The notes under the pieces: model-generated
Told to the model about the DNA's origin: nothing
The model's database searches: none
What the model saw: the letters and a program-made list of their open reading frames with translations, nothing else
Origin: Octopus sinensis
Lineage: Eukaryota
NCBI RefSeq assembly: GCF_006345805.1
Contig: NC_043022.1
Span: forward strand, 22,010,001 to 22,074,000
Direction of reading: 5' to 3'
DNA: 64,000 nt
Position numbers and translations under genes: made by a program
Shown here: positions 10,073 to 62,923 of the stretch, one piece after another
How the letters are laid out: every line of letters starts with the position of its first letter
Position numbering within the stretch: position 1 is the stretch's first letter

Positions 10073-10400
10073 ATTGTTCAGGTCACTGCCTGGAATCGAA
10101 CTCGGAATCTGGGGGTTAGTAGCCCGTGCTGTTAACCACTACGCCACGGGCATATGGTGTAGTGGTTAAGAGTGCGGGCTACTAACTCCAAGATTCCGAG
10201 TTCGATTCCAAGCAGTGACCTGAACAATATAACAACAACAATAATAATAATAACATCAAAAAATACCTTAGGAATGAGAACCCAGGTTCGAAATTTCCCC
10301 AAGACACCTGATGAAGGCTGGAGGGTATATCAGCCGAAACGTGTCAACAACAAACAAGATGAGAACAAATATCCGTTGAATGTAAAAATTTAAATAATGG
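10073..10400 (+). mobile_element. Composite element: head-to-head tRNA-like heads followed by a hammerhead-containing segment
   Basis: 74-nt inverted arms 10073-10146 and 10155-10228; A box TGGTGTAGTGG and B box GAGTTCGATTCC; HHR motif at 10303-10345. Confidence 0.7.
10303..10345 (+). ncRNA. Minimal hammerhead ribozyme motif, probably defective
   Basis: gacac-CTGATGA-a-ggctg(gagggtatat)cagcc-GAAA-c-gtgtc. Stem I gacac/gtgtc pairs, but no separate NUH triplet lies between GAAAC and stem I. Confidence 0.65.
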
Positions 10401-20376: not shown

Positions 20377-20505
20377 TCTTAGTTTTTCTAACTTCTTACG
20401 TCCTAGGTAACCTCGGCAGCAGGCTTGGAATTTGGTAATTGTTCCTGTGATCTTCTCATCACGAGCCACTTCAAGGCTAGTAAGTGAACCAGCACGGAAG
20501 AAAAC
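20377..20505 (-). CDS. MYO18: Myosin-XVIII exon: end of converter plus IQ motif
   Basis: tacag|GTT...AGA|gtaagt, 129 nt, phase 0/0. [43 protein letters not shown] aligns to recalled human MYO18A VFFRAGTLARLEEQRDEQ...FQAACRGYLAR. Confidence 0.92.
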
Positions 20506-23622: not shown

Positions 23623-25129
23623 TTGGAATCTGTGAATGAATTTTAGGAATTCAAGAAGAATAGTTAAGAGGAAATGACCAGCCGTAAACTAGATGTTCTT
23701 TTCGTAATCTTTTTTTTTCCTGTCATTTGGATTAATTCGTCCATTGACAAATATCTCGCCCCTACATTTCCTGGAGATCAACTTACTCCAGAAACTTCCA
23801 GATCAGTTCTTCTTGAGTTTTCGCCAAAGAAAGGGTCCTGTCTTGCTTTACCTAGAACATGTGTTCGCATCCCCCACAAGACACGAACTATATGGAGATT
23901 TAAAGCCAACTAACTTTAGGCATTATTATCAAACCTATTCATACTGGGAAAAGGAATTACGATTTATATCAATGTGATACGTAAATCATATTAACAGTAA
24001 GATCACACTGACAAAAAAGCGAAGATAGAAATTACAGGGTTCAAGTCAGATTTCATAGATTTCTGGAAGAAAGGTTTCTGTAGAAGATCAAAATAATCTC
24101 AAATAATAAGAGGAGAATATCAAACTAAAAGTCCGTTGATAAAGGGAAGTAAGTCCAGTTAAGGGAGGTAACTAATACAGACTGAAATCGGGTGGAAAGC
24201 TGTCAAGTGGTTTTGCCAATTGTCTTCAATACGCTTTCTCTTGTGGAAACGATAGAAATAACTTAATTTCGTCTGTGTTTGGGTTACGTGACTGTCAAAG
24301 AAGCTAACATTGATTGATAAACACAGAAGGACGAACAAGTGGATGGCTAAAGTAAATAAAATGGGATCTTTTCCTTTTCTTTTGACACATTCTACCAGTA
24401 TACGAAGTTTTCCAGTGTTTAGTTAACTAGAAATTGTGTTGAAATCTGGCCTTCAAAAGGAAAAGATCCATAAAATGTAATAGGAGTGTGATATCTATAT
24501 ATGACTGGAATTGAAAGGATTTTAAAAGAAACTAAGGGAATGAGCTTTTATTGAGCCAAATAACCCAAGATGATTCAGTGTCAGTTCTCTGCATATCATT
24601 TTTGCCATCAAACAAGTATAAATGTTGCAGGATATCGTTTTCCTCAGTCGTGTATCACCGAAATTTGTAAATAATGTAAGCTGACGAAAACTATTACATT
24701 TACACGCGCGCGCGCACGCACACACACAATCATCGTGACACTCCGTCGGTTACGACGACGATCGTTCCAGTTGAACCGATCAACGGAACAGTCTGCTCGA
24801 GAAATTAACGCGCAAGTGGCTGAGCACTCCACGGACACGTGTACTCTTAACGTAGTTCTCGGGGTGACACAGTGTGTCAAGGCTGGCCCTGAGAATTTGG
24901 TAGACAGAAACTGAAAGAAGCCCGTCATATATATGTATATGTATATATATAAATATATGCTAAATGATGATGATAGATATGCGTGTGTGTCTGTCACCCC
25001 CAACATCGCTTGACAACCGATGCTGGCGTGTTTATGTCCCCGTAACTTAGCGGTTCGGCAAAAGAGACTGATAGTATAAGTACTAGGCTTACAAAGAATA
25101 AGTCCTGAAGAAGCTTTCATCTTGTTGGT

Positions 25130-35707: not shown

Positions 35708-37681
35708 TGATGATAATAATAATAAATGCCCTGATGCAGTACCAGGCAGTGGCTCTTGTGGCTTCTGATCTTAACTGATTGGAAGTGTCATCATGTACAT
35801 TGTTTTGTCTTGGTATAAAAGATGGGCTACAGCAAATATTCTGCTCAGTATCACAGATTTGCTTGTCAGTTGTTTGACCATAACCAGCTGAGCATGTCCC
35901 TTAGTGGCTGACGATATGTGCATCTCTGATCACGAGCAGAAGTATTGGGGGAGCATCATAGCCAAAGAGGGATTCTTTGGGGTTTGGATAATTCACCTCT
36001 GGAAGCATGGGTGGTTCGTTCAACATCCTTTAACAATCCTTATTCAGGGATCTTTTGAGCGGGATGGGCTATTCGACCAGAAGAAAATTCTAACTGGGCC
36101 CCACCTGCAAGGTCATGCGCTGTCTATCTTGATATGAGATCACTATGTTGCGCACATATGGTTGTGATGCATGTGCTTGTTGTACCCTTATCAGACGGGT
36201 AGTCAGGATGGGTATACTGGGCTTCGTATATTTTACCCCAGTGTCACTTTGATGGCATGCACTGCTCTCTCACTCAATAATAATAATAATAATAATAATG
36301 GTTTCAAATTCTGCTACAAGGGCTGACATTGATAAATAATAACAACAAAAATATAATTTGTTATGAGAAATAACTCAACTTCTAGATTGACAAACTCTTC
36401 TACTCTCTATCCGTCACCATTAATCTATTTATCTCATTATTATTTACCACACTTAAGGTGACAAGCTGGCAGAATCGTTAGCATGCTTAGTGGCATTTTC
36501 GTCCACCCTTTCATTCTGAGTTCAAATTCTGCTGAGGCTGACTTTGCCTTTCATCCTTTTGGGGTTGGTAAATTAAGAACCAGTTGAGTACTGGGGTCGA
36601 TGTAATCAGCTTAACCCCTCCCCGAACTTGCTGGCCTTGTGCCAAAGTTTGAAACCATTATTGACCACACTTTCTCTGTATAGGTATTATCTCACACATT
36701 GCTTTCATTTTGTTCAAAGCTTTATCTTCTAATGTTTACTTGTATTTTATTAAAGCTATCACATACAAAATCCTCTTTTCTGACTGGGTGAAAAAGCTGA
36801 AACTTTAAATCCCCTGTAACATTTTACAAAAATTTTTCTGGAATAAATGAGTCACAAACTCAGATTCAGCATGAAAAAGCACACCAATATACCAATTTTG
36901 AGTATTTTTACTTGATTTTAAAATTTCAAAATCTGTGGCAGCAACAAAGAATTTCTCCTTATTTGTCTATCTCTTTCATTTTTTTGCTTTACACATGGTA
37001 AACTTTTCCCCTCTCTATAAATTTATCACACTCTCTATAAAAGTATATAGCTCATGCTTAGTGTGTGTGCATGTGTGTAATGAATTTCAATAGGTTGACA
37101 AAGTGGTTTAAAAAAGGTATGTTAAAGATTATTTTAACAGCATACTTTTCTGCTTGTAAATGTTTTATCTTACACACACATGAACTTGCTTGGTGTGAAG
37201 TGGGGGATTAAAAATTTAAACTATAATTTTTTTTTTGTTGTTGCTTAAATCTCAACAATGGACCACTGGACCATCATTTCATAAAATGTGTTTATGAGGG
37301 GAAAAAAATATTTAAAAACATCAATACGTGTGACCAAGAAATGAGGAAGGTACCAAGTGGTTGTGAATGTGCTAGAAACAACAGCTAAATCTCTCTTAAA
37401 TCACACATTTTTTTATCTGAAAATTATTTTGAAATTATAAATAGAAACAAATTGCAGATTTAGACTATCTCTATTTTAAAACTATGATTAAAAAAAAAAT
37501 TCCAAAGAAGAACCAAAATTTTAGGATTTAGGGTGGGAGTGGAGGAAACCAATGCTATGCCAGTTTATATATATATATATATATATAGCAAAAACTGTCT
37601 GAAAAACGGCAACGAGAAACTCAGAGTAACAGATTTTGTTGAATTTTCTGCTGCTTAAAATAAAGTATATATATATATATA

Positions 37682-38540: not shown

Positions 38541-39571
38541 CACATATATATATATACACAGACTGGAACCTGGTGCAGCCTCCTGGCTTCCCAGACCCCG
38601 ATCAAACCATCTAACCCATGCTAGCATGGAAAACGGACGTTAAACGATGATGACGATGACACAAATACAGATATCATACTTTTATCACTACTATCGCTGT
38701 CATCCATGTATCTATTGCTCATGCTTCTAGCACTCATGGCCCTTACTACTTATTTCTCAATTACTACCACTCCTTCTAAATCTCACTTTACTATGCTACT
38801 AGTGTGACTAAGGATGGTAGTGTATCTCTGTTCTTCACCATACAGTGCTTCTAGTACAACTAAGGATGCTAATACTCTCGCTAACACTCTAGCCGTTCTC
38901 TCATCCTTATCGCTGCTTCACCCACATTGAGACATTTACTTAAGAACCTATTTCTTTATTACCCACAAGGGGCTAAACATAGAGGGGACAAACAAGGACA
39001 GACATAGGTATTAAGTCGATTACATCGACCCAGTGTTTAACTGGTAACCTTCCCCAGATTCACATGTACCCCATAAACTCTACCTATACTCTCTTCTAAG
39101 TTGTTTGGTATTGACCCTCATCATTCACCATCAAGATTTATCTACCTCTTTCTATCCCTCACCCATCACATTCTCACCTCTATCCTCCCTGGTGCTGGTG
39201 TCACAATAAAATGACCTCAGTGCATTCTGTTAAGAATGGGGAGAAGAGATCTTTTCAGTCTTGTCAAAGACATGGTAACCTCCCTAGTGTCGGTGCGTCA
39301 AAAAACAAAAGGCACCTAATGCACTCAGAAAAGCAGCTGTTGATGTTAGGAAGGACATCCAGGTATAGAAACCAAGCCAAAATGAAACTTATAAGCAATG
39401 TGGTCATTTGATCTATTTGGGAGTGCAGCAACAAGGTATGACACCTCTACAAGCATGGAAAGTAGATGTAAAGCAATGATGACTAATTATATGAAAACAC
39501 AAAGAGAAAGCACAACAACGCAAGGACGTGGAACAAGTATAGTATTATTGGACGCTCAGGAAAGAAGGATG

Positions 39572-39606: not shown

Positions 39607-40133
39607 ATAGGAAAAGGAAAGATCCAAAGAAGGGAAGACAGAGGAAAAAAAAATCGACAACAGTACACACGCGGTCACATTTTGAATGTATATATATATA
39701 TACACATCTACATATATTCAGTCAACAGCTGAAATCTGGAGGTGCTCAATATAAAGTCTTTATTGAGGACTAGGTCCCTGGAGTAAAGAGTGGCTATAAG
39801 AGAAATCTAGGTGAGCTGATATGAGTTAGTTATACAGGTAAATACAATAAGGTTTTGATATATATTAATATACATACATATACACAGAGAGACAACTAAA
39901 AAAAATTCATCCTCAAACCCAACAAATTCATTTACGTGTGTGTGTGTGTGTGTGTGTAGTTGTAGGCAGAGTAATAAAAGTCAAACATTGAGGAAGGAAA
40001 TTTATGTGGGGTTTGGTGTAGGGTTGCAACCATCCAACTGTTGCACCCTTGCAGAAACTGAACAAGAGAAACAGTAGAACACATGACACCAAGGAGCAGG
40101 GCAGGGTTTTAAAAAAAATATGATAATACATAC

Positions 40134-40787
40134 ATTGAACTCTGAACCATGAAGCTGGGGTCCCATTTTATAGTGGGAACGTATAAGAAGCTGAGGAAGA
40201 TCAACAAATTTGTTGTTGTTGTTGTTGTTAGAGTTATCTTCATCATCACTGGCAGTAGTGATCCAACAGCGAAAGTTGTTGCATATAAAATCCTTGACAG
40301 AGTATTCCAGTGACAGAGATGTGTCACAAGAAGAGTAGGCAGATGAAGAAGAGAGAGAACTGGCTAAAGATGAGCACGATTCGAAGGACGAGAAGGAAGA
40401 TTCCAAAGAAAGGAACTTGGTTTGGGTAGCAGAACCGTGAAGGCTGCTCAGGTCCTCGTCAATGTAGGAAATAAGATCATCCTCATCAGAGAGGGGTTGT
40501 TTGGTCTTGGTTTGCCCCTCACTTTTGTCTGGACTTTCAGCAGGTAGACATGGGTAAGACAGTAAAGGTAACACAGCTGTAGTAGTGTTATTTTCCTCAT
40601 CTGGCTCTTCTTCAGCAAGGTATTGTGCAAGTAACAGATTTTGGGATGGCATGATAATCATGCAGGAAATATAACTGTTCAGCTGATTGCTAAAGTCAGT
40701 GTGAAGAACAGAGTCCGGCCACTTCACAGGACACCTTGACTTCGTGCTTACTGGTAGAATTTGGTGGGTACTGATAAGTTCTTCCAT
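40134..40787 (-). CDS. Candidate alternative first coding exon of MYO18 (218 aa, Ser/acidic-rich)
   Basis: Longest ORF in the window and non-repetitive; acaATGG start; AAT|gtatgt donor after exactly 218 codons (phase 0, matching the 20505 acceptor). Confidence 0.6.
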
Positions 40788-42089
40788 TGTTGTATAACAG
40801 GGGCTGAGAGGGAAAGAGAGAGAGAGTGGATTGAAGGCAAAGAAGAGTGGGGAGGGAGTAGAGAAGGGAGTGTGTGGTATATGTGGTGAAAAAATTTAAG
40901 GGATACCAATATGAAACTGTGTTTCAAAGGAGGTGGTGGTTGAAGAACTGGTTGTTTGGGAGTGAATGGTGTCTAAAGTTCCGTGGGAAGAAGGGTTCAT
41001 AGTTACACCTTAACTACTGCAGGTAGCGAAACAGTGGATGGAACAGTCAGGATTGAAGGGGACTGTGTGAGAAGAGTCTACCCCGGAAGACTGAGAAAGG
41101 TATTCTAACTAAACTGACTTAGTTACAGTAGTAACACGGAGAGGAGAGGAGAAGGCAGAGGAGAGAGTGTGAGAGAGAGAGAGAGTGTGAGAGAGAGAGA
41201 GAGAGAGGCAGGGAGGGGGATTAACAAGTAAACAGACTGTGAATACCAACTAACAGACAAACAGCAGATGGGATGGAGGTGGAGGAGGTGAGTGTAGGTG
41301 TAGTGAATCAGATGGTAGTGAGACATCATCATCATCATCACCATCATCATCATGGGTACTGTACAGACAGTATGTGTGTGGGGGTGGGGGGGGTTGGTTG
41401 TAGTGTGAAGGTAAGGACGACAGAAGAAGGTGAACATCAACAGAAAGTCTGGTGAGGAGACTGACAGAGGAAGTAGTTGCAATGTTCAACAGTGGTGGCA
41501 ATTGTAACTACTACTACTACAACAGTAGCATTAGTAGCAGCTACAACAACTAGTAACAACAGAACTCCATCACTATATACAAAAGGTATAATGCTTGCAT
41601 GGCTTATGTGTGTGATTATAAACACACACACACATATGCACACACACACACATGCACACACACACACACGCACACACACATGCACACACACGCACACACA
41701 CACACACACATGCACACACACACACACACACATTGAAATACAGGTATACTCAAATGCACATAGAATCTCCAACCACAAATCCTCATTTAGGATCCTGGAA
41801 AAGATGCTATGCCACATCCTTTGTTGACCACGTATGGCACCCGAAGGACAAAGGGAAGATCCTAGAAAAAACTAAGTTCCTGTATCAACGGGAACAAATG
41901 TTGCAAGCTGTGCATAGCAGAATGGGCAAAGTTATTAAGGAGCTCCCTCGACCCAGGGAATATCTTAAATTCAATGATGGAAGTTTTCAGAGCCTTTTCA
42001 GAGCCTATTTACACTTCAAGCGATTCCTACTAAGATCCTGGGACCTGCAAGCTAACTGGGTGGATTGCAGATAATGGTCTAAAGAAGAC

Positions 42090-44794: not shown

Positions 44795-45133
44795 GATGTA
44801 GGTGATATTAAGAACAAGATGACAGTTCAAGAAATCAAAGGTTGGGATGGAAGATCTAGCAAGAACAACAACAACATCAACAGATGTAAAAGGAGAAGTG
44901 GGTAAGAGGGGGGGAAAAAGAGTAAATATAACCAAAACATTTACATATATCAGGATGTATTGCAAAATTGAGATGAAATACAGTGAGAAGATGGTAGAAA
45001 AGGAAGAGGTGGAGGGGGGAGGTTTGTTAAGGTTTGGGTAAAATAAAAGGGTGGAAAGTGGGTAGGTGAGGACAACGTCAGCAGGGTATCTGGTGTAAAC
45101 ATGCCGAGACCCTCAGGTAAATCGTGTGTTTAC

Positions 45134-45328
45134 CTTGCCTAACCCATATGGGATGTGTAGAAAAGGGGGCAGAGTGGGAAGGGGGAAGTGGTTGTAGATG
45201 CTGGCAAGGGTAGGTTGGGTGTCTGTAGGTACAGGGGAAAGTGGGAAGGGTGGGGGCTTCTGTGGCTTCAAGGGGTTCCCTTTCTTTCTTCTATTTTGGT
45301 AACCGAGTTTAAGTCGTAAGTTCAGCAT
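45134..45328 (-). CDS. Second candidate alternative first coding exon of MYO18 (65 aa, basic/Pro-rich)
   Basis: agaATG start; MLNLRLKLGYQNRRKKGNPLKPQKPPPFP...IPYGLGK; AAG|gtaaac donor in phase 0; TE-poor island. Confidence 0.4.
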
Positions 45329-45679
45329 TCTGACAACACTAACCCAACCTTGAGTCTGCTTTTTAGTCAGCATCACTATCACCAACATCGCTACTATACT
45401 TACCACAACACCCCCCACAACTTGTCATACCCTTCTCCATTACCATATCATCTTCATCATAAGAAACCCATCATCACAACCATTTTCATAACTGTAATAT
45501 CATCGTCGTCATCTCCACCACCATCAACATTGCCATCACTTATAACACCCTCATCATCACTATCATCATCACCATCATCACATCCATCTCCATCATCATC
45601 AATATTGCCAACATAATCATCATAATGTTCATTCCTATGATCTCCATCACTATCATCTTCATTAACATATGTCTGTTTC

Positions 45680-46375
45680 TTTATTACCGACAAGGGGCTA
45701 AACACAGAGCGGACAAACAAGGACAGACAAAGGGATCAAGTCGATTACATCAACCCCAGTGCGTAACTGGTACTTAATTTATCGACCCCGAAAGGATGAA
45801 AGGCAAAGTCAACCTCGGCGGAATTTGAACCCAGAACATAACGGTAGACGAAATACGGCTACGCATTTCGTCCGGCGTGCTAACGTTTCTGCCAGCTCGC
45901 CGCCTTATTAACATATATCATCAGTATCGCTATGACATCCTAATTCTCACCATCATTATCATAGGTTCACCATCTCAACAAGCCACTGGACAGTTATAAC
46001 TAGAGTATTTTTTGATCTGCTCAGTTGTGTCCGCTTGGTCAAGGCTGATGCAGGGCTGAACAACAATAAAGGATTAGGTAACTGAACCCGTAATTGAAAC
46101 TGTAACCTATTCTGTCATTTTTCTATTTGTTTTTCACTTCCTTCTTATTTCTTTATTGCCCACAAGGGGCTAAACATAGAGGACAAACAAGGACAGACAA
46201 AGGGATTAAGTCGATTACATTGACCCCAGTGCATAACTGGTCCTTAATCTATCGATCCCGAAAGGATGAAAGGCAAAGTCAACCTCGGCGGAATTTGAAC
46301 TCAGAACGTAACGGCAGACGAAATACGGCTACACATTTCACCCGGCGTGCTAACGATTCTGCCAGCTCGCCACCT
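45680..46375 (-). mobile_element. Two SINE family B copies (45680-45905, 46145-46375)
   Basis: Reverse complements of the 5428 and 27998 copies. Confidence 0.8.
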
Positions 46376-47002
46376 TGTTTTTCACTTCCTTCTATTCAAA
46401 CCTATAAGATGATGATGATAACGAGGAAGAGGAGGAGAAGGAGCTATAAATTTTCAGGGCTCTCTCTGACTCTGTCCACCCAACTCTAAATAGGTACAAC
46501 ACAGAGGTATAACTAATGAAACACTAGAAGTATGGAAGCAGTACCATGAAATTAAAGCGTAATTAGTTAGCTTGTAGTCAGAGGAATCCTGTTTTGAGAG
46601 AAATCTACCTGCAATGGACTGGCATTCTCATCATGCCCAACGCTGCAGAAAGCAGAGATAAGCACTGCCCCTTGTACTTTCATGGAATTTGGAAGATAAG
46701 AAAAAAAGGAAAAAGAAAAAAAAATTAGTTAAAGCTGCGTTTTAGATATATCAGTTGTAATTTGAGAGGGAAAAGTATAGATAAGACATTAGGGATTAAG
46801 GTAGGTTTTCAAATTGGTGTTTAACATCTACTATGTGGGATTACAGTTATTTATAGGGTTTGGCTGGTTACAGTTTTTATCTAAAACCTGATGGATACAC
46901 ACTATTACACACAGTCTGTAACACAAATATACACACATAAACACATATATTTTCACACTCTTGGATAGATTCTATAACACACAGAATACAAAATACATAT
47001 AT

Positions 47003-47741: not shown

Positions 47742-48070
47742 ATCCACTCAGTCGAAGTCGACTCTCGGTCACTCGTTGGATCAGTGTCCTCCAGTCAGTT
47801 CTATCCTGGGCCGCTTCTTTAAGATTGGCTATGTCCATTCTGGTATCACTTTTGATGGTGTCAAGCCAGCGGGTTCTTGGTCAGCCTCTTCCTCTCTTGC
47901 TACTGACCATTCCGAGCATGATGTCCTTCTCCAGGGATTTTCTCCGCATAATATGACCGAAATATGCCAATCTACGCTTGGTGATCCTAGCTTCTAGCAA
48001 CATTTTCAGCCTTATCTGCTTAAGAACTTCTCCATTGGTGAGCCTCGCTGTCCATGGAATCCGCAAAAGT
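47742..48070 (-). mobile_element. RTE-BovB-like LINE 3' fragment
   Basis: RIPWTARLTNGEVL...RRLAYFGHIMRRKSLEKDIMLG...DWRTLIQRVTESRLRLSG*. Confidence 0.85.
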
Positions 48071-48089
48071 CTTTGTACTTTAGCAAACC

Positions 48090-48318
48090 TTAACCCTTTA
48101 GCATTCAGATACTTCTGTCAAATGTAAAGCTTATTTATTCACACCATGTAAAATTAATCCTGCATTATTTCATGGCTTTGAGATTTCAATGATGTGATTG
48201 TTTATTTTTAAAAATGACACAATAAGGTAGCTATGAATGACCATATCGGACTAGTTTGAACATAAAATAGGTAGAATATTTTGGCCGGATATGGCCGGTT
48301 TAAACACCAAAGGGTTAA
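48090..48318. mobile_element. piggyBac-like MITE
   Basis: TTAA-ccctttagca ... caaaggg-TTAA. Confidence 0.8.
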
Positions 48319-49049
48319 ATCTGACAGGGAGGGCTTCATTAATCAAAACTTCCAAAACCGATCTAATTGACTCTTTCACCACTACTACAACAACCACTGC
48401 TCTTCTTAACCCCCCCCCCCCCCTGACTGCATAGAACCCCCACTTCTTTCACATAAAATAATTCGCTGTTCCCAAGTATATCTTTTTTCCAGACAACTCA
48501 GTAACCACTATCTTCATGCTGAAAGCAAGCCTCTCCGTTTTTTCTATTTAGAATCTCTCCCTCTGTCTTAATTACAAATCCATAACATGTATGGTGTATC
48601 CAAGACTACATTATGCAACACACAAACATATTCATTCCTAATATGTACTCTGTATTTCTAGCAACTCGTAGCAGTTGCCTACATTTTGTATGTAGTGTAC
48701 CAATAACTAATCAAACACTGTAAATAAATACCTTTCAATCATGAATCGGTTTACGTATTTGTTTACATACACACTTAACCACTACATGTGCTTTGTGTTA
48801 GAAAACAGGAAGATGCAATTTGAGATTTTAGCTGCTATTTCTAAAAGTTAGAGACTAGGCAGACTAGACATTATTTCATCACAGGCACACCTTGATTGAG
48901 TAGGCCAAAGATTAAAAAAACCTATCAGCCTGTGTCATTAATTCATTCATAATTATATAAGAAGTGTTCTGTCAGACAGTTTCAATTCATTTTCAATATG
49001 ATCAAAAATTATTAATTAACAAGATATTAGTAACTTTAAATATTGGTAT

Positions 49050-49764
49050 TGATTTTAAACAGTTTTGACCAAGTGGTCAGTATTCAATAAAATTGCCATT
49101 GGCTTCAACCACGGCCTCCAGACGACTTCAAAATCTCCTGCAACATTTCTGGATGCTCTCCTTGCTTAAGTTGGTCAATGCTGCCATAATCCTTGCCTTC
49201 AGTTCATCCTTGGGGTTACAAGGAGTTTTGTGGATCTCTTGCTCAACTGCACCCCACACATAATAATCAAGGGGCTTGCAGTCTGGAGAAGTAGGCGGCC
49301 AGATGATAGGGTAATGTGGTCACAGAAATTGTCTGACAGCCAGACCGGGTTCTCTTGCTTGTGTGGTATGGTGTAGAGTCCTGTTGCCAGACAAAGGGTC
49401 TTCCAGCAGCCACCCTCTTCACCAAGGGCGGCACTAGGCCTCCATGTGGAGTCCGAAGCAGTGTAGGAAGATGGATGTAGTCATCATAATGCTGACTGGA
49501 TGTTTGATTTCTATCACTCTTGGTACTCTGCACTATCCTCAGATTGACATCCAAACACTCTGAAATGTTCATATTGGAGCTTCTGGCATGAATGCCAGGT
49601 AGTACAGCATGTCATTTCCAAATTTCTGGCATCATGGTGGTGTTTTTCTCACAGATGGTGCCCAGCTGACTCTACTATACTGTGTAGTTGCCAAAATCAA
49701 AAACAAACAAAGCGCCTGCATGAAATTAAAAATATAAAATGCCGACAGTTTACCCATTACATCC

Positions 49765-49770
<6 letters not shown>
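49050..49770 (-). mobile_element. Internally deleted maT-like element (duplicate at about 52340-53090)
   Basis: WVKRVAAGRPFVWQQDSTPYHTSKRT motif; homologous to 42090-43130. Confidence 0.75.
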
Positions 49771-49800
<30 letters not shown>

Positions 49801-49873
49801 TATATGTAAATATATGTATATATGTATGTGTATACACATATATATATATATATATATGTATGTATGTGTATAC

Positions 49874-49907
<34 letters not shown>

Positions 49908-49990
49908 GTATACATATATATATATATAATATATATATATGTATGTATGTGTATACATATATATATATGTATGTATGTATGTATGTGTAT

Positions 49991-50028
<38 letters not shown>

Positions 50029-50095
50029 GTATGTGTATACATATATATATATGTATGTATGTATGTATGTGTATATATATATATATATATATGCA
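49770..50095. repeat. Long compound (TA)n/(TATG)n microsatellite (counterpart about 53090-53375)
   Basis: Direct inspection. Confidence 0.95.
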
Positions 50096-50909
50096 CACAT
50101 ATTTGCCACTATCTCTCCTGCTCTCTCTAGAACTCTTGCTGTTTTCCACTCTTTCTCTCTCTCTCTCTCTCTCTCACTAGGTAACCATGTACTTTTTCTA
50201 CAGCAAGGCACCTGTTTCTGTCTCTCTATAACACTCTAACCTGCCATCATCTGATATTTTTATTTTCACATAATAGGTGCAGGCGTAACAGTGTGGTTGA
50301 GAAGTTTGTATTTTTGGATTCAGTTTTCTACTGCATGGCACCTTAGGCAAGTGTCTTCTGACGTTCACGATGGAAACTGAAAGAAGTCATTCATACACAT
50401 GCATGCATGCACGTATGTGTGTATGTTTGTGAATATGCTTCTGTTACCTTGTCTTGACATTGCATTATTGTTGAAAACAAACGTCATTCATTTCCAATAT
50501 TCTTCAAAAACATGTCTAGCCTTGGAAGAAGCATCATCTTGCTGGGAAACAAGTATGGCTTGGCAACAAGAAAAGCATTCAGCTGGAGAAAACCTGTCTC
50601 AATAAACAGTCCAACAAAAGCAGGCATAGAAATGTGACTACAAATGTAATTCTGAACAATTTACAGTTTTTGGCTCGCTTTATGTGGCTTCTTCGCATTA
50701 GACTCTTTACTCTTTTACTTATTTCAGTCATTTGACTGTGGCCATGCTGGAGCACCGCCTTTATAGTCGAGCAAATCAACTCCGGGACTTATTCTTTGTA
50801 AGCCTAGTACTTATTCTACCAGTTACTTTTGCTGATCTGCCAAGTTATGGGGACGTAAACACACCAGCATCGGTTGTCAAGCGATGTTGGGGGGAGGGAC
50901 AAACACACA

Positions 50910-50961
<52 letters not shown>

Positions 50962-51300
50962 TATACATACATACACACACACACACATATACAATGGGCT
51001 TCTTCCAGTTTCCGTCTACCAAATCCACTCACAAGGCTTCGGCTGGCCTGAGGCTATAGTAGAAGACACTTGCCCAAGGTGCCATGCAGTGCGACTGAAC
51101 CTGGGACCATGTGGTTGTTAAGCAAGCTACATACCACACAGCCACTCATACTATATATTTTTCTTGCAGAATATGTCTCAATGTAACTCTTCCATCCACT
51201 CAGTCATTCTTTTAAGATGTCAGACAGTCAGTATTCATTGATTTAACATCTTTCTATTTTTCAGTCAACTAGTGTCTGGGTAAGTAATAGTAAACACTAT

Positions 51301-51343
51301 ACTTCTCTGAGGAGGTCTAATAAGACTGAAACATATCTAGAGT
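51301..51343 (+). ncRNA. Hammerhead motif, duplicate copy 1 (cleavage triplet ATC, stem III pair broken)
   Basis: CTGAGGA-ggtct(aata)agact-GAAA-catatc. Confidence 0.6.
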
Positions 51344-53088
51344 TACCAATGAACCTACCAAATATAAAACTTTTCTCCACTACATACTCACATACCCACT
51401 ATCTATTTCTAATTGATTTTAATTAATTTAAATCCCTCGTTATTCTGGAGTCGTTTCCTCTTAACTTCTGGGACCAGAATTAATCATGAAAACTAATTGC
51501 TTTTCCTCACTACAATTCATGTATTCTTATATTTGTTTCAGTCATTTGACTGTGGCCATGCTGGAGCACCGCCTTTAGTCGAACAAATCGACCCTAGGAC
51601 TTATTCTGTAAGTCCAGTACTTACTCTATCAGTCATTTTTGCCGAACCACTAAGTTACGGGGACGTAAACACACCAGTTTGGTTGTCAAGCGATGGTGGG
51701 GGGAACAAACACACATATACATACATATATATATGACGGGCTTCTTTCAGTTTCCATCTACCAAATCCACTCACAAGGCTTTGGTCGGCCTGAGGTTATA
51801 GTAGAAGACACTTGTCCAAGGTGCTAACCTATCAGCCTGTGTCATTAACTCATTCATAATTATATAAGAAATGTTCTGTCAGACAGTTTCAATTCATTTT
51901 CAATATGATCAAAAATGAGTATTTTTTTTCATTTACTTGTTTCAGTCATTTGACTGTGGCCATGCTGGAGCACCGCCTTTAGTCGAGCATATTGACCCCA
52001 GGACTTATTCTTTGTAAGCCTAGTACTTATTCTATCAGTCTCTTTTGCCAAACCGCTAAGTTACGGGGACGTAAACACACCAGCATCGGTTGTCAAGCGA
52101 TGTTGGGGGAGGAGGGCAAACACAACACACAAACCTACATATATATATATATTATATATATATATACGACGGGCTTCTTTCAGTTTCCGTCTACCAAATC
52201 CACTCACAAGGCTATAGCAGAAGACACTTGCCCAAGGTGCCACACAGTGGGACTGAACCCAGAACCATGTGGTTGGTAAGCAAACTACTTACCACACAGT
52301 CACTCCTACACCTATTAGTAACTTTAAATATTGGTATTGATTTTAAACAGTTTTGACCAAGTGGTCAGTATTCAATAAGATTGCCATTGGCTTCAACTAC
52401 GGTCTCCAGACGACTTCGAAATCTTCAGTAACATTTCTGGATGCTCTCCTTGTTTAAGTTGGTCAATGCTGCCATAATCCTTGTCTTCAGTTCATCCTTG
52501 GGGTTACAAGGAGTTTTGTGGGTCTCTTGCTCAACTACACCCCACACATAATAATCAAGGGGGTTGCAGTCTGGAGAAGTAGGTGGCCAGATGTTAGGGT
52601 AATGTGGTCACATAAATTGTCTGACAGCCAGACCGGGTTCTCTTGCTTGTGTGGTATGGTGTAGAATCCTGTTGCCAGACAAAGGGTCTTCCAGCAGCCA
52701 CCCTCTTCACCCAGGGCGGCACTGGGCCTCCATATGGAGTCTGAAGCAGTGTGGGAAAATGGATGTAGGCATCAACATCACCATCGCTAGTAATCACTCC
52801 AAACACCATAACACTGACTGGATGTTTGATTTCTATCACTCTCAGTACTCTGCACTATCCTCAGATTGACATCCAAAAACTCTGAAATGTTCATATTGGA
52901 GCTTCTGGCATGAATGCCAAGTAGTACAGCATGTCGTTTCCAAATTTCTGGCATCATGGTGGTGTTTTTCTCACAGATGGTGCCCAACTGACTCTACTAT
53001 ACTGTGTAGTTGCCAAAATCAAAAACAAACAATGCGTCTGCGTGAGATTAAAAATATAAAATGCCGACAGTTTACCCATTACATCCTC

Positions 53089-53122
<34 letters not shown>

Positions 53123-53210
53123 TATATGTAAATATATGTATATATGTATATGTATATATATCTATGTATATATGTATATATATATATATGTATATATGTA
53201 TATATATGTA

Positions 53211-53254
<44 letters not shown>

Positions 53255-53300
53255 TGTATATTTATATATATATATGTATATATATATGTATGTATACATG

Positions 53301-53379
<79 letters not shown>

Positions 53380-54320
53380 TATTTGCCACTATCTCTCCGG
53401 CTCTCTCTAGAACTCTTGCTGTTTTCCACTCTTTCTCTCTCTCTCTCGCTAGGTAACCATGTACCTCCTCTACAGCAAGCCACCTGTTTCTGTCTCTCTA
53501 TAACACTCTAACCTACCATCGTCTGATATTTTTATTTTCACATAATAGGTGCAGGCGTAACAGTGTGGTTGAGAAGTTTGTATTTTTGGATTCAGTTTTC
53601 CACTGCATGGCACCTTAGGCAAGTGTCTTCTGACGTTCACGATGGAAACTGAAACAAGTCATTCATACACATGCATGCATGCACGTATGTGTGTATGTTT
53701 GTGAATATGCTTCTGTCTCCTTGTCTTGACATTGCATTATTGTTGAAAACAAACGTCATTCATTTCCAATATTCTTCAAAAACATGTCTAGCCATGGAGG
53801 AAGCATCATCTTGCTGGGAAACAAGTATGGGTTGGCAACAAGAAAAGCATTCAGCTGGAGAAAACCTGTCTCAATAAACAGTCCAACAAAAGCAGGCATA
53901 GAAATGTGACTACAAATGTAATTCTGAGCAATTTACAGTTTTTGGCTCGCTTTATGTGGCTTCTTCGCATTAGACTCTTTACTCTTTTACTTATTTCAGT
54001 CATTTGACTGTGGCCATGCTGGAGCACCGCCTTTATAGTCAAGCAAATCGACACAAGAGCTTATTCTTTGTAAGCCTTGTACTTATTCTACCAGTTTCTT
54101 TCGCCGAACTGCCAAGTTACGGGGATGTAAACACACCAGCACCGGTTGTCAAGCGATGTTGGGGGGAGGGACAAACACACACACACACATATATATGTAT
54201 ATATATGTGTATATATATATGTATATATATATATAAAATTAATTAAGGGTAGAAATTGATATTTATCAATTAAAACCAGTGGTCAAGCATATTAAAAAAG
54301 AATCCGAAGATTAAAATATT

Positions 54321-54457
54321 TATATATACCAATTAAGGACTGAACACGAAAAATGGACTGTCAACATGCTAGATATAGACGTTTTGTGGAGAATGGCGAT
54401 TTGACATCTATATCTAGCATGTTGACTGTCTATTTTTCGTGTTCAGTCCTTAATTGG

Positions 54458-54466
<9 letters not shown>
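54321..54466. repeat. Long inverted repeat (~59-bp arms) within an insertion in a SINE microsatellite
   Basis: tatatataccaattaaggactgaacacgaaaaat...gtcaacatgctagatataga and its reverse complement, 2 mismatches, 27-nt loop. Confidence 0.85.
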
Positions 54467-54499
<33 letters not shown>

Positions 54500-54812
54500 T
54501 ATACAATGGGCTTCTTCCAGTTTCCGCCTACCAAATCCACTCACAAGGCCTTGGTTGGCCTGAGGCTATAGTAGAAGACACTTGCCCAAGGTGCCATGCA
54601 GTGGGACTGAACCTGGGACCATGTGGTTGTTAAGCAAGCTACATACCACACAGCCACTCATACTATATATTTTTCTTGCAGAATATGTCCCAATATAACT
54701 CTTCCATCCACTCAGTCATTCTTTTAAGATGTCAGACAGTCAGTATTCATTGATTTAACATCTTTCTATTTTTCAGTCAACTAGTGTCTGGGTAAGTAAT
54801 AGTAAACACTAT

Positions 54813-61333: not shown

Positions 61334-61399
61334 CTGACTTAATCCAATGCGATAGTTGAGTTTATCGATATCCATGTGATCCAGATAATGTTTGATAAT
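61334..61399 (-). CDS. MYO18: Myosin-XVIII converter exon
   Basis: tcttcag|ATT...CAG|gtaagg, 66 nt, phase 0/0. IIKHYLDHMDIDKLNYRIGLSQ matches recalled human [22 protein letters not shown] in length and in the GLS motif. Confidence 0.88.
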
Positions 61400-62828: not shown

Positions 62829-62923
62829 CTGTCTTTCATCCATGCCATCTGTTTTGAGGCCAAGAGGCATGAGAACCTCAAAACGGTGTTTAAATTCGCT
62901 GAACTGCAGGAAATCAGGGAAAC
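62829..62923 (-). CDS. MYO18: Myosin-XVIII motor exon (post-SH1, GYP-equivalent)
   Basis: gtttcag|GT TTC CCT...CAG|gttagt, 95 nt, phase 1/0. GFPDFLQFSEFKHRFEVLMPLGLKTDGMDERQ vs recalled human GYPDHMVFSEFRRRFDVL...VDERR. Confidence 0.92.

Follow-up and report, generated by a model that had tools for sequence, protein, structure and literature searches.

We analysed a 64,000-nucleotide (nt) stretch of the Octopus sinensis genome (NCBI RefSeq assembly GCF_006345805.1, contig NC_043022.1, positions 22,010,001 to 22,074,000 of the forward strand), here called the window, whose own positions are used throughout. In it, the minus strand carries part of a myosin heavy-chain gene, and a very long intron of that gene holds an open reading frame (ORF) of 218 codons that ends at a splice donor. 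The ORF exon sits on the same strand as the myosin, downstream of the motor exons, between the converter exon at 61399–61334 and the IQ exon at 20505–20377; a first-pass annotation of this DNA had likewise called it intronic. We conclude that it is almost certainly a real, coding and conserved exon with a conserved phase-0 donor and, on balance, we favour its being the first coding exon of an alternative, motor-less transcript of the host myosin gene. The features are as follows, in the order of transcription and with a slash for each splice junction.

62829–62923, minus strand: converter exon of the host myosin, (G)FPDFLQFSEFKHRFEVLMPLGLKTDGMDERQ/gttagt; it starts in phase 1, ends in phase 0 and matches positions 619–679 of 679 of Pfam Myosin_head.
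61334–61399, minus strand: last converter exon of the host myosin, IIKHYLDHMDIDKLNYRIGLSQ/gtaagg; phase 0 at both ends.
20506–61333, minus strand: 40.8-kb host intron, defined by the exon coordinates, with 20.5 kb upstream and 19.6 kb downstream of the ORF exon; both borders are in phase 0.
40804–40825, minus strand: polypyrimidine tract and CAG acceptor, tctctctctctttccctctcag/; the 108-nt open stretch before the ATG has no other AG.
40788–40803, minus strand: untranslated leader of 16 nt from the acceptor to the ATG, without an upstream ATG.
40134–40787, minus strand: coding part of the intronic exon, 218 codons from the ATG, serine-rich and acidic, predicted to be disordered and homologous to a 183-codon ORF in the cuttlefish Sepia.
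40257–40286, minus strand: most conserved motif of the ORF, ICNNFRCW(I/V)T, residues 168–177 of the product.
40124–40133, minus strand: intronic half of the conserved donor, gtatgtatta, part of a 22-nt block that is shared with the cuttlefish and includes the last 12 exon bases.
20377–20505, minus strand: IQ exon of the host myosin (VFFRAG..., 43 codons, then /gtaagt), phase 0 at both ends, with a Pfam IQ match.

The host gene is recognized from its three exons in the window. The two converter exons were located with MYH9 and MYO18A probes (tblastn) and with converter-end peptides (a BLOSUM62 sliding match); these served as leads only, and the exons were then verified against real PDB sequences and Pfam. 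Joined together, the three exons align without a gap to residues 707–801 of human MYH9 (non-muscle myosin IIA; E 1e-20) and, against Pfam, cover the final 60 positions of Myosin_head and then an IQ motif. The IQ exon alone has residues 761–801 of non-muscle myosin IIA as its best PDB match (E 1e-9). Only the first four residues of the IQ exon still belong to the Pfam motor model, and a protein that ran from the ORF into 20505 would therefore be without a motor. Two other searches contributed little: strict regular expressions for myosin motifs found only VFFRAG in the window, and a phmmer search of PDB with concatenated, filtered stop-free stretches of the minus strand gave no match although exon B, on the motor side, was in the first query, a method too insensitive for this purpose.

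Which myosin class the gene belongs to is a matter of 97 window residues (converter and IQ), which are about 47% identical to MYH9 and equally identical to a MYO18A probe sequence, a comparison that serves as a lead only. The 5′ part of the gene lies beyond the window, and in Sepia the annotated myosin gene carries a Myosin_head match alone. Squid muscle myosin heavy chain (MHC; 3i5f) and scallop muscle myosins score below human MYH9 against the joined host exons, and the PDB matches of these exons include no class-18 motor. Because the squid muscle MHC scores below MYH9, the host gene does not appear to be the muscle Mhc gene. In this region, much higher similarity to MYH9/10 or to squid MHC would be expected if the gene were truly orthologous to non-muscle myosin II or to muscle MHC. 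The host is possibly a divergent class-II-like gene, perhaps of class 18; class 18 itself is a reasonable guess, made by exclusion from those 97 residues.

The ORF opens with an ATG at 40787 in the context acaacaATGg and runs for 218 codons to a final AAT, which is followed by gtatgt at 40133. Its frame remains open past the donor to a TAA at 40004–40002, giving 261 amino acids from the ATG, and also extends upstream to an in-frame TAA at 40898, so that 297 codons are stop-free (40895–40005), 36 of them upstream of the ATG. The other five frames of the same 654 nt contain 6–19 stops each. No open stretch in the window is longer, and the runner-up, with 210 codons, consists of microsatellite sequence. 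Shuffling the window 300 times in blocks of 2 kb with dinucleotides preserved gave longest open stretches of 158 codons on average (sd 23), and even the maximum of 276 stayed short of 297. The 218-codon product is rich in Ser (17.9%) and in Asp and Glu (14.2% together), with SDEDD and SDDED motifs, and its sole tandem repeat is a small (AAC)6 that encodes a run of Asn. As judged by 13-mers repeated elsewhere in the window, the ORF region is single-copy within it (repeated fraction 0.15–0.16 at 40–44 kb versus 0.35 window-wide), although microsatellites flank the exon ((GT)n at 39936–39957, (GA)n at 41139–41207 and (AC)n at 41622–41732). A search of the flanks for long terminal repeats or terminal inverted repeats bracketing the ORF found none, and an exact look-up of the 261-amino-acid ORF returned no recorded match. 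These results bear out what the first-pass annotation had said of the ORF itself: that it is the longest in the 64 kb, non-repetitive, and acidic and serine-rich, with an acaATGG start and an AAT/gtatgt donor after 218 codons.

A full HMMER search of 1.84 billion proteins (cluster representatives) returned exactly one match, P0001 (236 amino acids, E 6e-13), whose 90% cluster holds CAE1229497.1 of Acanthosepion (Sepia) pharaonis and five proteins from Logan assemblies. The homologous ORF is found in S. pharaonis and in two other Sepia lineages. Window and Sepia proteins share 38% amino-acid identity in collinear conserved blocks (CLPAE, SSAYSSC, ICNNFRCW(I/V)T, PQL..SH and a terminal SEFN) and have a similar composition (Ser 17–18%, Asp and Glu 14.2%). 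At the DNA level, just two pieces can be aligned between the loci. One is the region from SSAYSSC to ICNNFRCW (73% identity); the other is the junction block TCAGAGTTCAAT/GTATGTATTA, in which 22 of 22 nt are identical between window 40145–40124 and 10349–10370 of the Sepia contig L002 (blastn E 3e-5). The protein similarity ends three residues past SEFN, and those residues (VCI) are the translated donor gtatgtat. Frame and donor are both conserved between window and cuttlefish. Sepia Met1 aligns with Met43 of the window ORF (at 40661; Met46 is at 40652), and the first 42 codons (40787–40662) are unmatched in the cuttlefish, so that the conserved protein starts around Met43–Met46. The octopus may have an N-terminal extension, or translation may start there at an internal conserved Met.

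In S. pharaonis, the ORF starts at position 9812 of L002 (CAHIKZ030000616.1:768899-789378, assembly GCA_903632075.3), and an annotated 868-amino-acid gene with a Pfam Myosin_head match ends on the same strand 743 nt upstream of the ATG. A tblastx comparison of the 20-kb Sepia locus (10 kb either side of the ORF) with the whole window found no other conserved coding block; the remaining matches are low-complexity sequence and a shared relic resembling a long interspersed nuclear element (LINE). The record CAE1229497.1 itself (L002 10001–10480) is a stand-alone 159-amino-acid ‘unnamed protein product’ that begins at an internal Met and reads through the conserved donor, and this gene model is probably wrong. 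Word-index searches with the ORF or the IQ exon gave no matches, and with the alignment of window and Sepia they gave P0001 alone, with no further species and no spliced form; these nulls are weak for animals, because the search with the ORF missed P0001 and the search with the IQ exon missed MYH9, which shares at least seven five-residue words with that exon.

Contigs of the three Sepia lineages, which are 3–5% divergent, allowed a test for selection over 549 coding nt. Variable sites occupy 7 of 366 positions at codon positions 1 and 2 (1.9%), compared with 14 of 183 at position 3 (7.7%; Fisher p 0.0017) and 54 of 720 in the flanking introns (7.5%; p 7e-5). Positions 1 and 2 thus vary fourfold less than either, while position 3 and the flanks do not differ from each other (p = 1). 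There are no indel columns in the 549 coding nt, whereas the flanks have 6–40 gap columns per region; these counts are for L002–L003, the pair in which both contigs span the flanks, and the larger counts with L007 come from its shorter downstream flank. Synonymous and non-synonymous codon differences stand at 9:5, 7:4 and 10:7 in the three pairwise comparisons. Positions +1 to +10 of the donor have no variable site among the three lineages, and the read-through part beyond diverges as an intron would, by 4.8–9.2% pairwise and with 31 gap columns between L002 and L003. Taken together, the codon-position pattern, the indel-free coding part and the intron-like divergence past the donor point to a translated exon that ends at that donor. 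Purifying selection on the coding exon and the conserved donor are directly supported, as are the position inside a myosin gene and the phase compatibility with its next exon.

These data bear on two ways in which the ORF could be something other than a spliced exon. We find it scarcely credible that the ORF arose by chance in pyrimidine-rich low-complexity DNA or is a decayed transposon or retrogene ORF. Its sense strand is indeed C/T-rich, the Ser tract comes from TCT/TCC-rich DNA, and the product has neither a Pfam family nor an AlphaFold fold. Against this stand the shuffle test, the conservation between window and Sepia, the signature of selection across codon positions and the lack of indels, as well as a region that is single-copy in the window, has no bracketing terminal repeats and has the syntenic Sepia ORF as its sole relative in 1.84 billion proteins. 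Very improbable, too, is an unspliced single-exon gene in which the whole 261-codon ORF (40787–40005) would be translated, like the 159-amino-acid Sepia record. It would account for a frame that continues without a stop beyond the donor (43 codons in the window, 39–72 in the Sepia sequences) and for the read-through in the Sepia annotation. However, the sequence past the donor evolves like an intron among the Sepia lineages, the read-through tails end at differing places, and the similarity between window and Sepia stops 3 codons past the junction, where those codons are simply donor consensus.

The exon is bounded by an exceptional acceptor and an ordinary donor. The acceptor ctctcag/ at 40804/40803 is the best-scoring one on the minus strand of the window (11.7 bits, top 0.03% of 3,700 AG sites), compared with 3.6–7.8 bits for the three real host-gene acceptors. 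The donor at 40134/40133 is mediocre alone (5.1 bits with a simple position weight matrix, top 5.7% of the strand's GT sites, versus 8.5 and 12.0 bits for two real host donors) and is one of 10 phase-0 GTs inside the ORF; on these two counts, it gains significance only through the cross-species evidence. From the acceptor, the exon measures 670 nt (40803–40134), which leaves a remainder of 1 on division by three. The phase-0 donor is separated by 19,628 nt (40133–20506) from the phase-0 acceptor of the IQ exon at 20505, and when the two are joined in silico the frame is open and reads ...GSEFN-VFFRAG.... The equivalent acceptor in Sepia, ...ccacatctcag/ at L002 9758/9759, lies 53 nt upstream of the ATG, again with a leader that has no upstream ATG, and gives an exon of 602 nt (remainder 2). 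Because the distance from acceptor to ATG differs in this way, at 16 nt in the window (remainder 1) and 53 nt in Sepia (remainder 2), no upstream coding exon leads into the ORF frame in a conserved manner. Between window and Sepia, no conserved non-coding sequence was found upstream of the exon beyond CT-rich low complexity.

If the exon were included in the full-length transcript, a stop would follow after 35 codons in the window, where the frame is read on from exon B, and after 23 in Sepia. Given this early stop, the 670-nt length and the sole upstream AG being out of phase, the exon is no in-frame cassette in the window, and translation must consequently start at an ATG inside it. A cassette is less strictly excluded in Sepia, where a single weak AG, with the exon starting at L002 9779, would keep the frame; the window has no such AG. 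The first-pass annotation had reached the same view of an ATG-initiated exon that cannot be an in-frame cassette, from the acceptor at 40803 and the 670 nt; these figures, and its 19,628-nt intron to 20505, were recovered. Its term ‘first exon’ is probably inexact. In both species, a strong acceptor shortly before the ATG suggests a further 5′ exon, making it more likely that this exon is the first coding one and the second of the transcript, probably after an untranslated 5′ exon. Two other uses of the acceptor were considered and rejected: an in-frame insert into the full-length mRNA, for the length and the stop just given, and recursive splicing, since the sequence after the acceptor is cag/cccctg and regenerates no donor.

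The same acceptor raises the question of an internal ‘poison’ exon of the full-length myosin transcript, which would shift the frame, end translation 35 codons past the converter and yield a tail-less head or nonsense-mediated decay, with the long ORF being secondary. The strength of the acceptor, its Sepia equivalent and the premature stop on inclusion in both species are what such an exon would have. However, constraint at codon positions 1 and 2 with a neutral position 3 marks an ORF translated in the ATG frame and does not fit a regulatory element acting at the nucleotide level, and the frame read from the motor exons is closed after 23–35 codons and differs from the conserved one. Use as a poison exon could coexist with a headless isoform but cannot explain the conservation, and as the main explanation we regard it as quite unlikely.

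A somewhat unlikely alternative of more weight is an independent gene nested on the same strand in the myosin intron, with further exons and a poly(A) site in the 19.6 kb downstream, or with the myosin exons skipped, and with a product unrelated to myosin. The exon has an acceptor, an ATG and a donor of its own, the Sepia annotation makes it a separate gene, and the case for joining 40134 to 20505 consists of phase compatibility and an open joined frame. On the other side, the Sepia model is a read-through of the conserved donor into neutrally evolving sequence and so is no evidence for a separate gene. A tblastx comparison of the 10 kb downstream in Sepia with the whole window found no second conserved coding block, although short exons could be missed. 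Furthermore, when a donor lies in a host intron and on the host strand, splicing would by default be expected to use the next acceptor of the host, provided that no closer acceptor is available.

We therefore return to the reading that we favour on balance, a motor-less isoform of the host myosin, and set out how it would arise. The transcript would begin within the 20.5 kb of intron that precede the exon, probably with a short untranslated exon joined by splicing to the acceptor at 40804/40803. Translation would start inside the exon, either at the ATG at 40787 or at the conserved Met43 or Met46, and the phase-0 donor at 40134/40133 would be joined to the next constitutive host exon, the phase-0 IQ exon at 20505. 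The predicted product would have a unique, disordered N terminus of about 180–220 residues, rich in Ser and Asp/Glu and containing SSAYSSC, ICNNFRCW.T, PQL..SH and SEFN, followed by a light-chain-binding IQ region and a myosin tail, with no motor domain. By analogy with catchin/myorod and the Drosophila myosin rod protein (MRP), its tail could mediate co-assembly with full-length myosin and thereby alter filament properties. We infer the upstream 5′ exon and its promoter, the junction with the IQ exon, the tail and the function from the arrangement of the locus.

Several observations weigh against this reading. No tail or coiled-coil exon was found in the remaining window downstream (1–20376), and no promoter signal was found, with CpG observed/expected ratios being low (0.17–0.27) over the 4 kb upstream of the exon. 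Phase compatibility alone would be met by chance in one case in three. Given its strong acceptor, the exon could also be taken into transcripts made from the main promoter and would bring them to a premature stop. In Sepia, the intragenic position depends on an automatic gene model, and neither converter nor IQ exons were found within 10 kb either side of the ORF; with these exons more than 10 kb away, the Sepia introns there would be long as well. Finally, the donor is read through in each of the six proteins in the homologue cluster, and the contigs behind them, L001–L008, are collinear with genomic DNA and thus uninformative on splicing. The interpretation of the first-pass annotation, a headless, catchin-like myosin-18, is as a whole partly supported.

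The N-terminal region itself has little predicted structure. AlphaFold, given a four-sequence alignment, returned a mean predicted local distance difference test score of 30.8 and no confident element, with a low-confidence hairpin over ICNNFRCW alone, and Pfam found no family match in the ORF product. These results agree with a disordered stretch, rich in Ser and acidic residues, that carries a few short conserved motifs; by analogy with myorod, it is plausibly a region for phosphorylation and docking.

The intron also contains other features. Ratios of observed to expected CpG peak at 45001–46500 (0.85) and 24001–25000 (1.02), compared with a window mean of 0.38. On the minus strand, the first peak precedes the exon by 4.7–5.7 kb, a possible place for an alternative promoter; as it overlaps copies of a dispersed repeat (45673–45853), it may merely reflect a young repeat. 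Dispersed short-repeat copies (38948–39031 with 45673–45756, and 36497–36619 with 45731–45853), 83–90% identical and in both direct and inverted orientation, flank the repeat-poor 40–44 kb that holds the exon. Further upstream in the same intron is a tandem duplication of about 3.3–3.5 kb at 49000–54800, whose copies (about 49.0–51.2 and 52.3–54.8 kb) are 93–97% identical, and the fraction of repeated 13-mers reaches 0.8–0.95 at 50–56 kb. A relic like the C-terminal part of a LINE reverse transcriptase lies at 47863–48150 on the minus strand (...RRLAYFGHIMRR...GRG.PRTRWLD...), to which Pfam gives no match, and tblastx finds similar LINE-like relics in the cuttlefish locus at L002 3771–3935 and 5026–5094.

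Headless myosins are rare and informative, in that they show the tail alone tuning filaments. If the favoured reading is true, the octopus exon would offer a handle on what the tail and light chains do without the head, and would bear on the regulation of cephalopod muscle or non-muscle filaments and on the repeated origin of such isoforms in molluscs. More broadly, and tentatively, coleoids may have an old, dedicated exon in a class-18 or divergent class-II-like myosin gene that would give a motor-less ‘IQ plus tail’ protein with a Ser-rich, acidic regulatory N terminus. This could be the first headless isoform of its class and a catchin-like filament component that evolved independently and still binds light chains. 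Cephalopod gene models need correcting in any case, because the public cuttlefish annotation presents a real coding exon as an anonymous, stand-alone 159-amino-acid protein that runs on through its splice donor.

Among the known headless myosins, catchin (Yamada et al. 2000) and MRP (Standiford et al. 1997) are both described in PMC3912159. Muscle Mhc genes give rise to these headless products, catchin/myorod of molluscan catch muscle and MRP of Drosophila, and the long unique exon of catchin is conserved among molluscs (PMC3912159). The N-terminal domain of myorod is a target of phosphorylation (PMC4410989). The N terminus of the window exon is likewise Ser-rich with acidic clusters, and could be a phosphorylation target too. 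In other respects the two differ. Catchin is a product of the muscle class-II Mhc gene, lacks the light-chain-binding region and has its junction with the rod deep within the coiled coil, whereas the host of the window exon does not appear to be the muscle Mhc gene, and its next exon encodes the last converter strand and the first IQ motif, a junction that is predicted. As this join point precedes the first IQ motif, light chains could still bind the predicted product. In addition, the window N terminus is similar to the Sepia ORF alone in the 1.84-billion-protein library, which is not known to hold catchin. Orthology with catchin is unlikely, because the host gene is apparently not the muscle Mhc gene.

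The predicted isoform resembles MRP in its alternative start inside a myosin heavy-chain gene and in a unique N terminus joined to a tail. In MRP, the N terminus comes from extending the first tail exon in the 5′ direction, and it lacks conservation even between closely related insects (PMC3912159). By contrast, the window exon is separate, lies 19.6 kb upstream of its presumed partner, and is conserved across two distant cephalopod lineages under purifying selection. Headless Myo10 (Hdl-Myo10) is a motor-less isoform of the vertebrate brain with an internal start (PMC6345916). This is the arrangement predicted here, but headless Myo10 belongs to another myosin class, is found in vertebrates only, forms no filaments and has no comparably long unique N-terminal domain. 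Within class 18, a 2021 review has all known isoforms retaining the (inactive) motor (PMC7900500), and our literature search for a headless Myo18 found none. The alpha, beta and gamma isoforms of Myo18A differ by their N-terminal extensions, and gamma has a muscle-specific N terminus with a Ser-rich extension (PMC7900500, PMC11112018). The predicted octopus isoform would likewise be set apart by an alternative N terminus, with a Ser-rich region recalling that of Myo18A-gamma.

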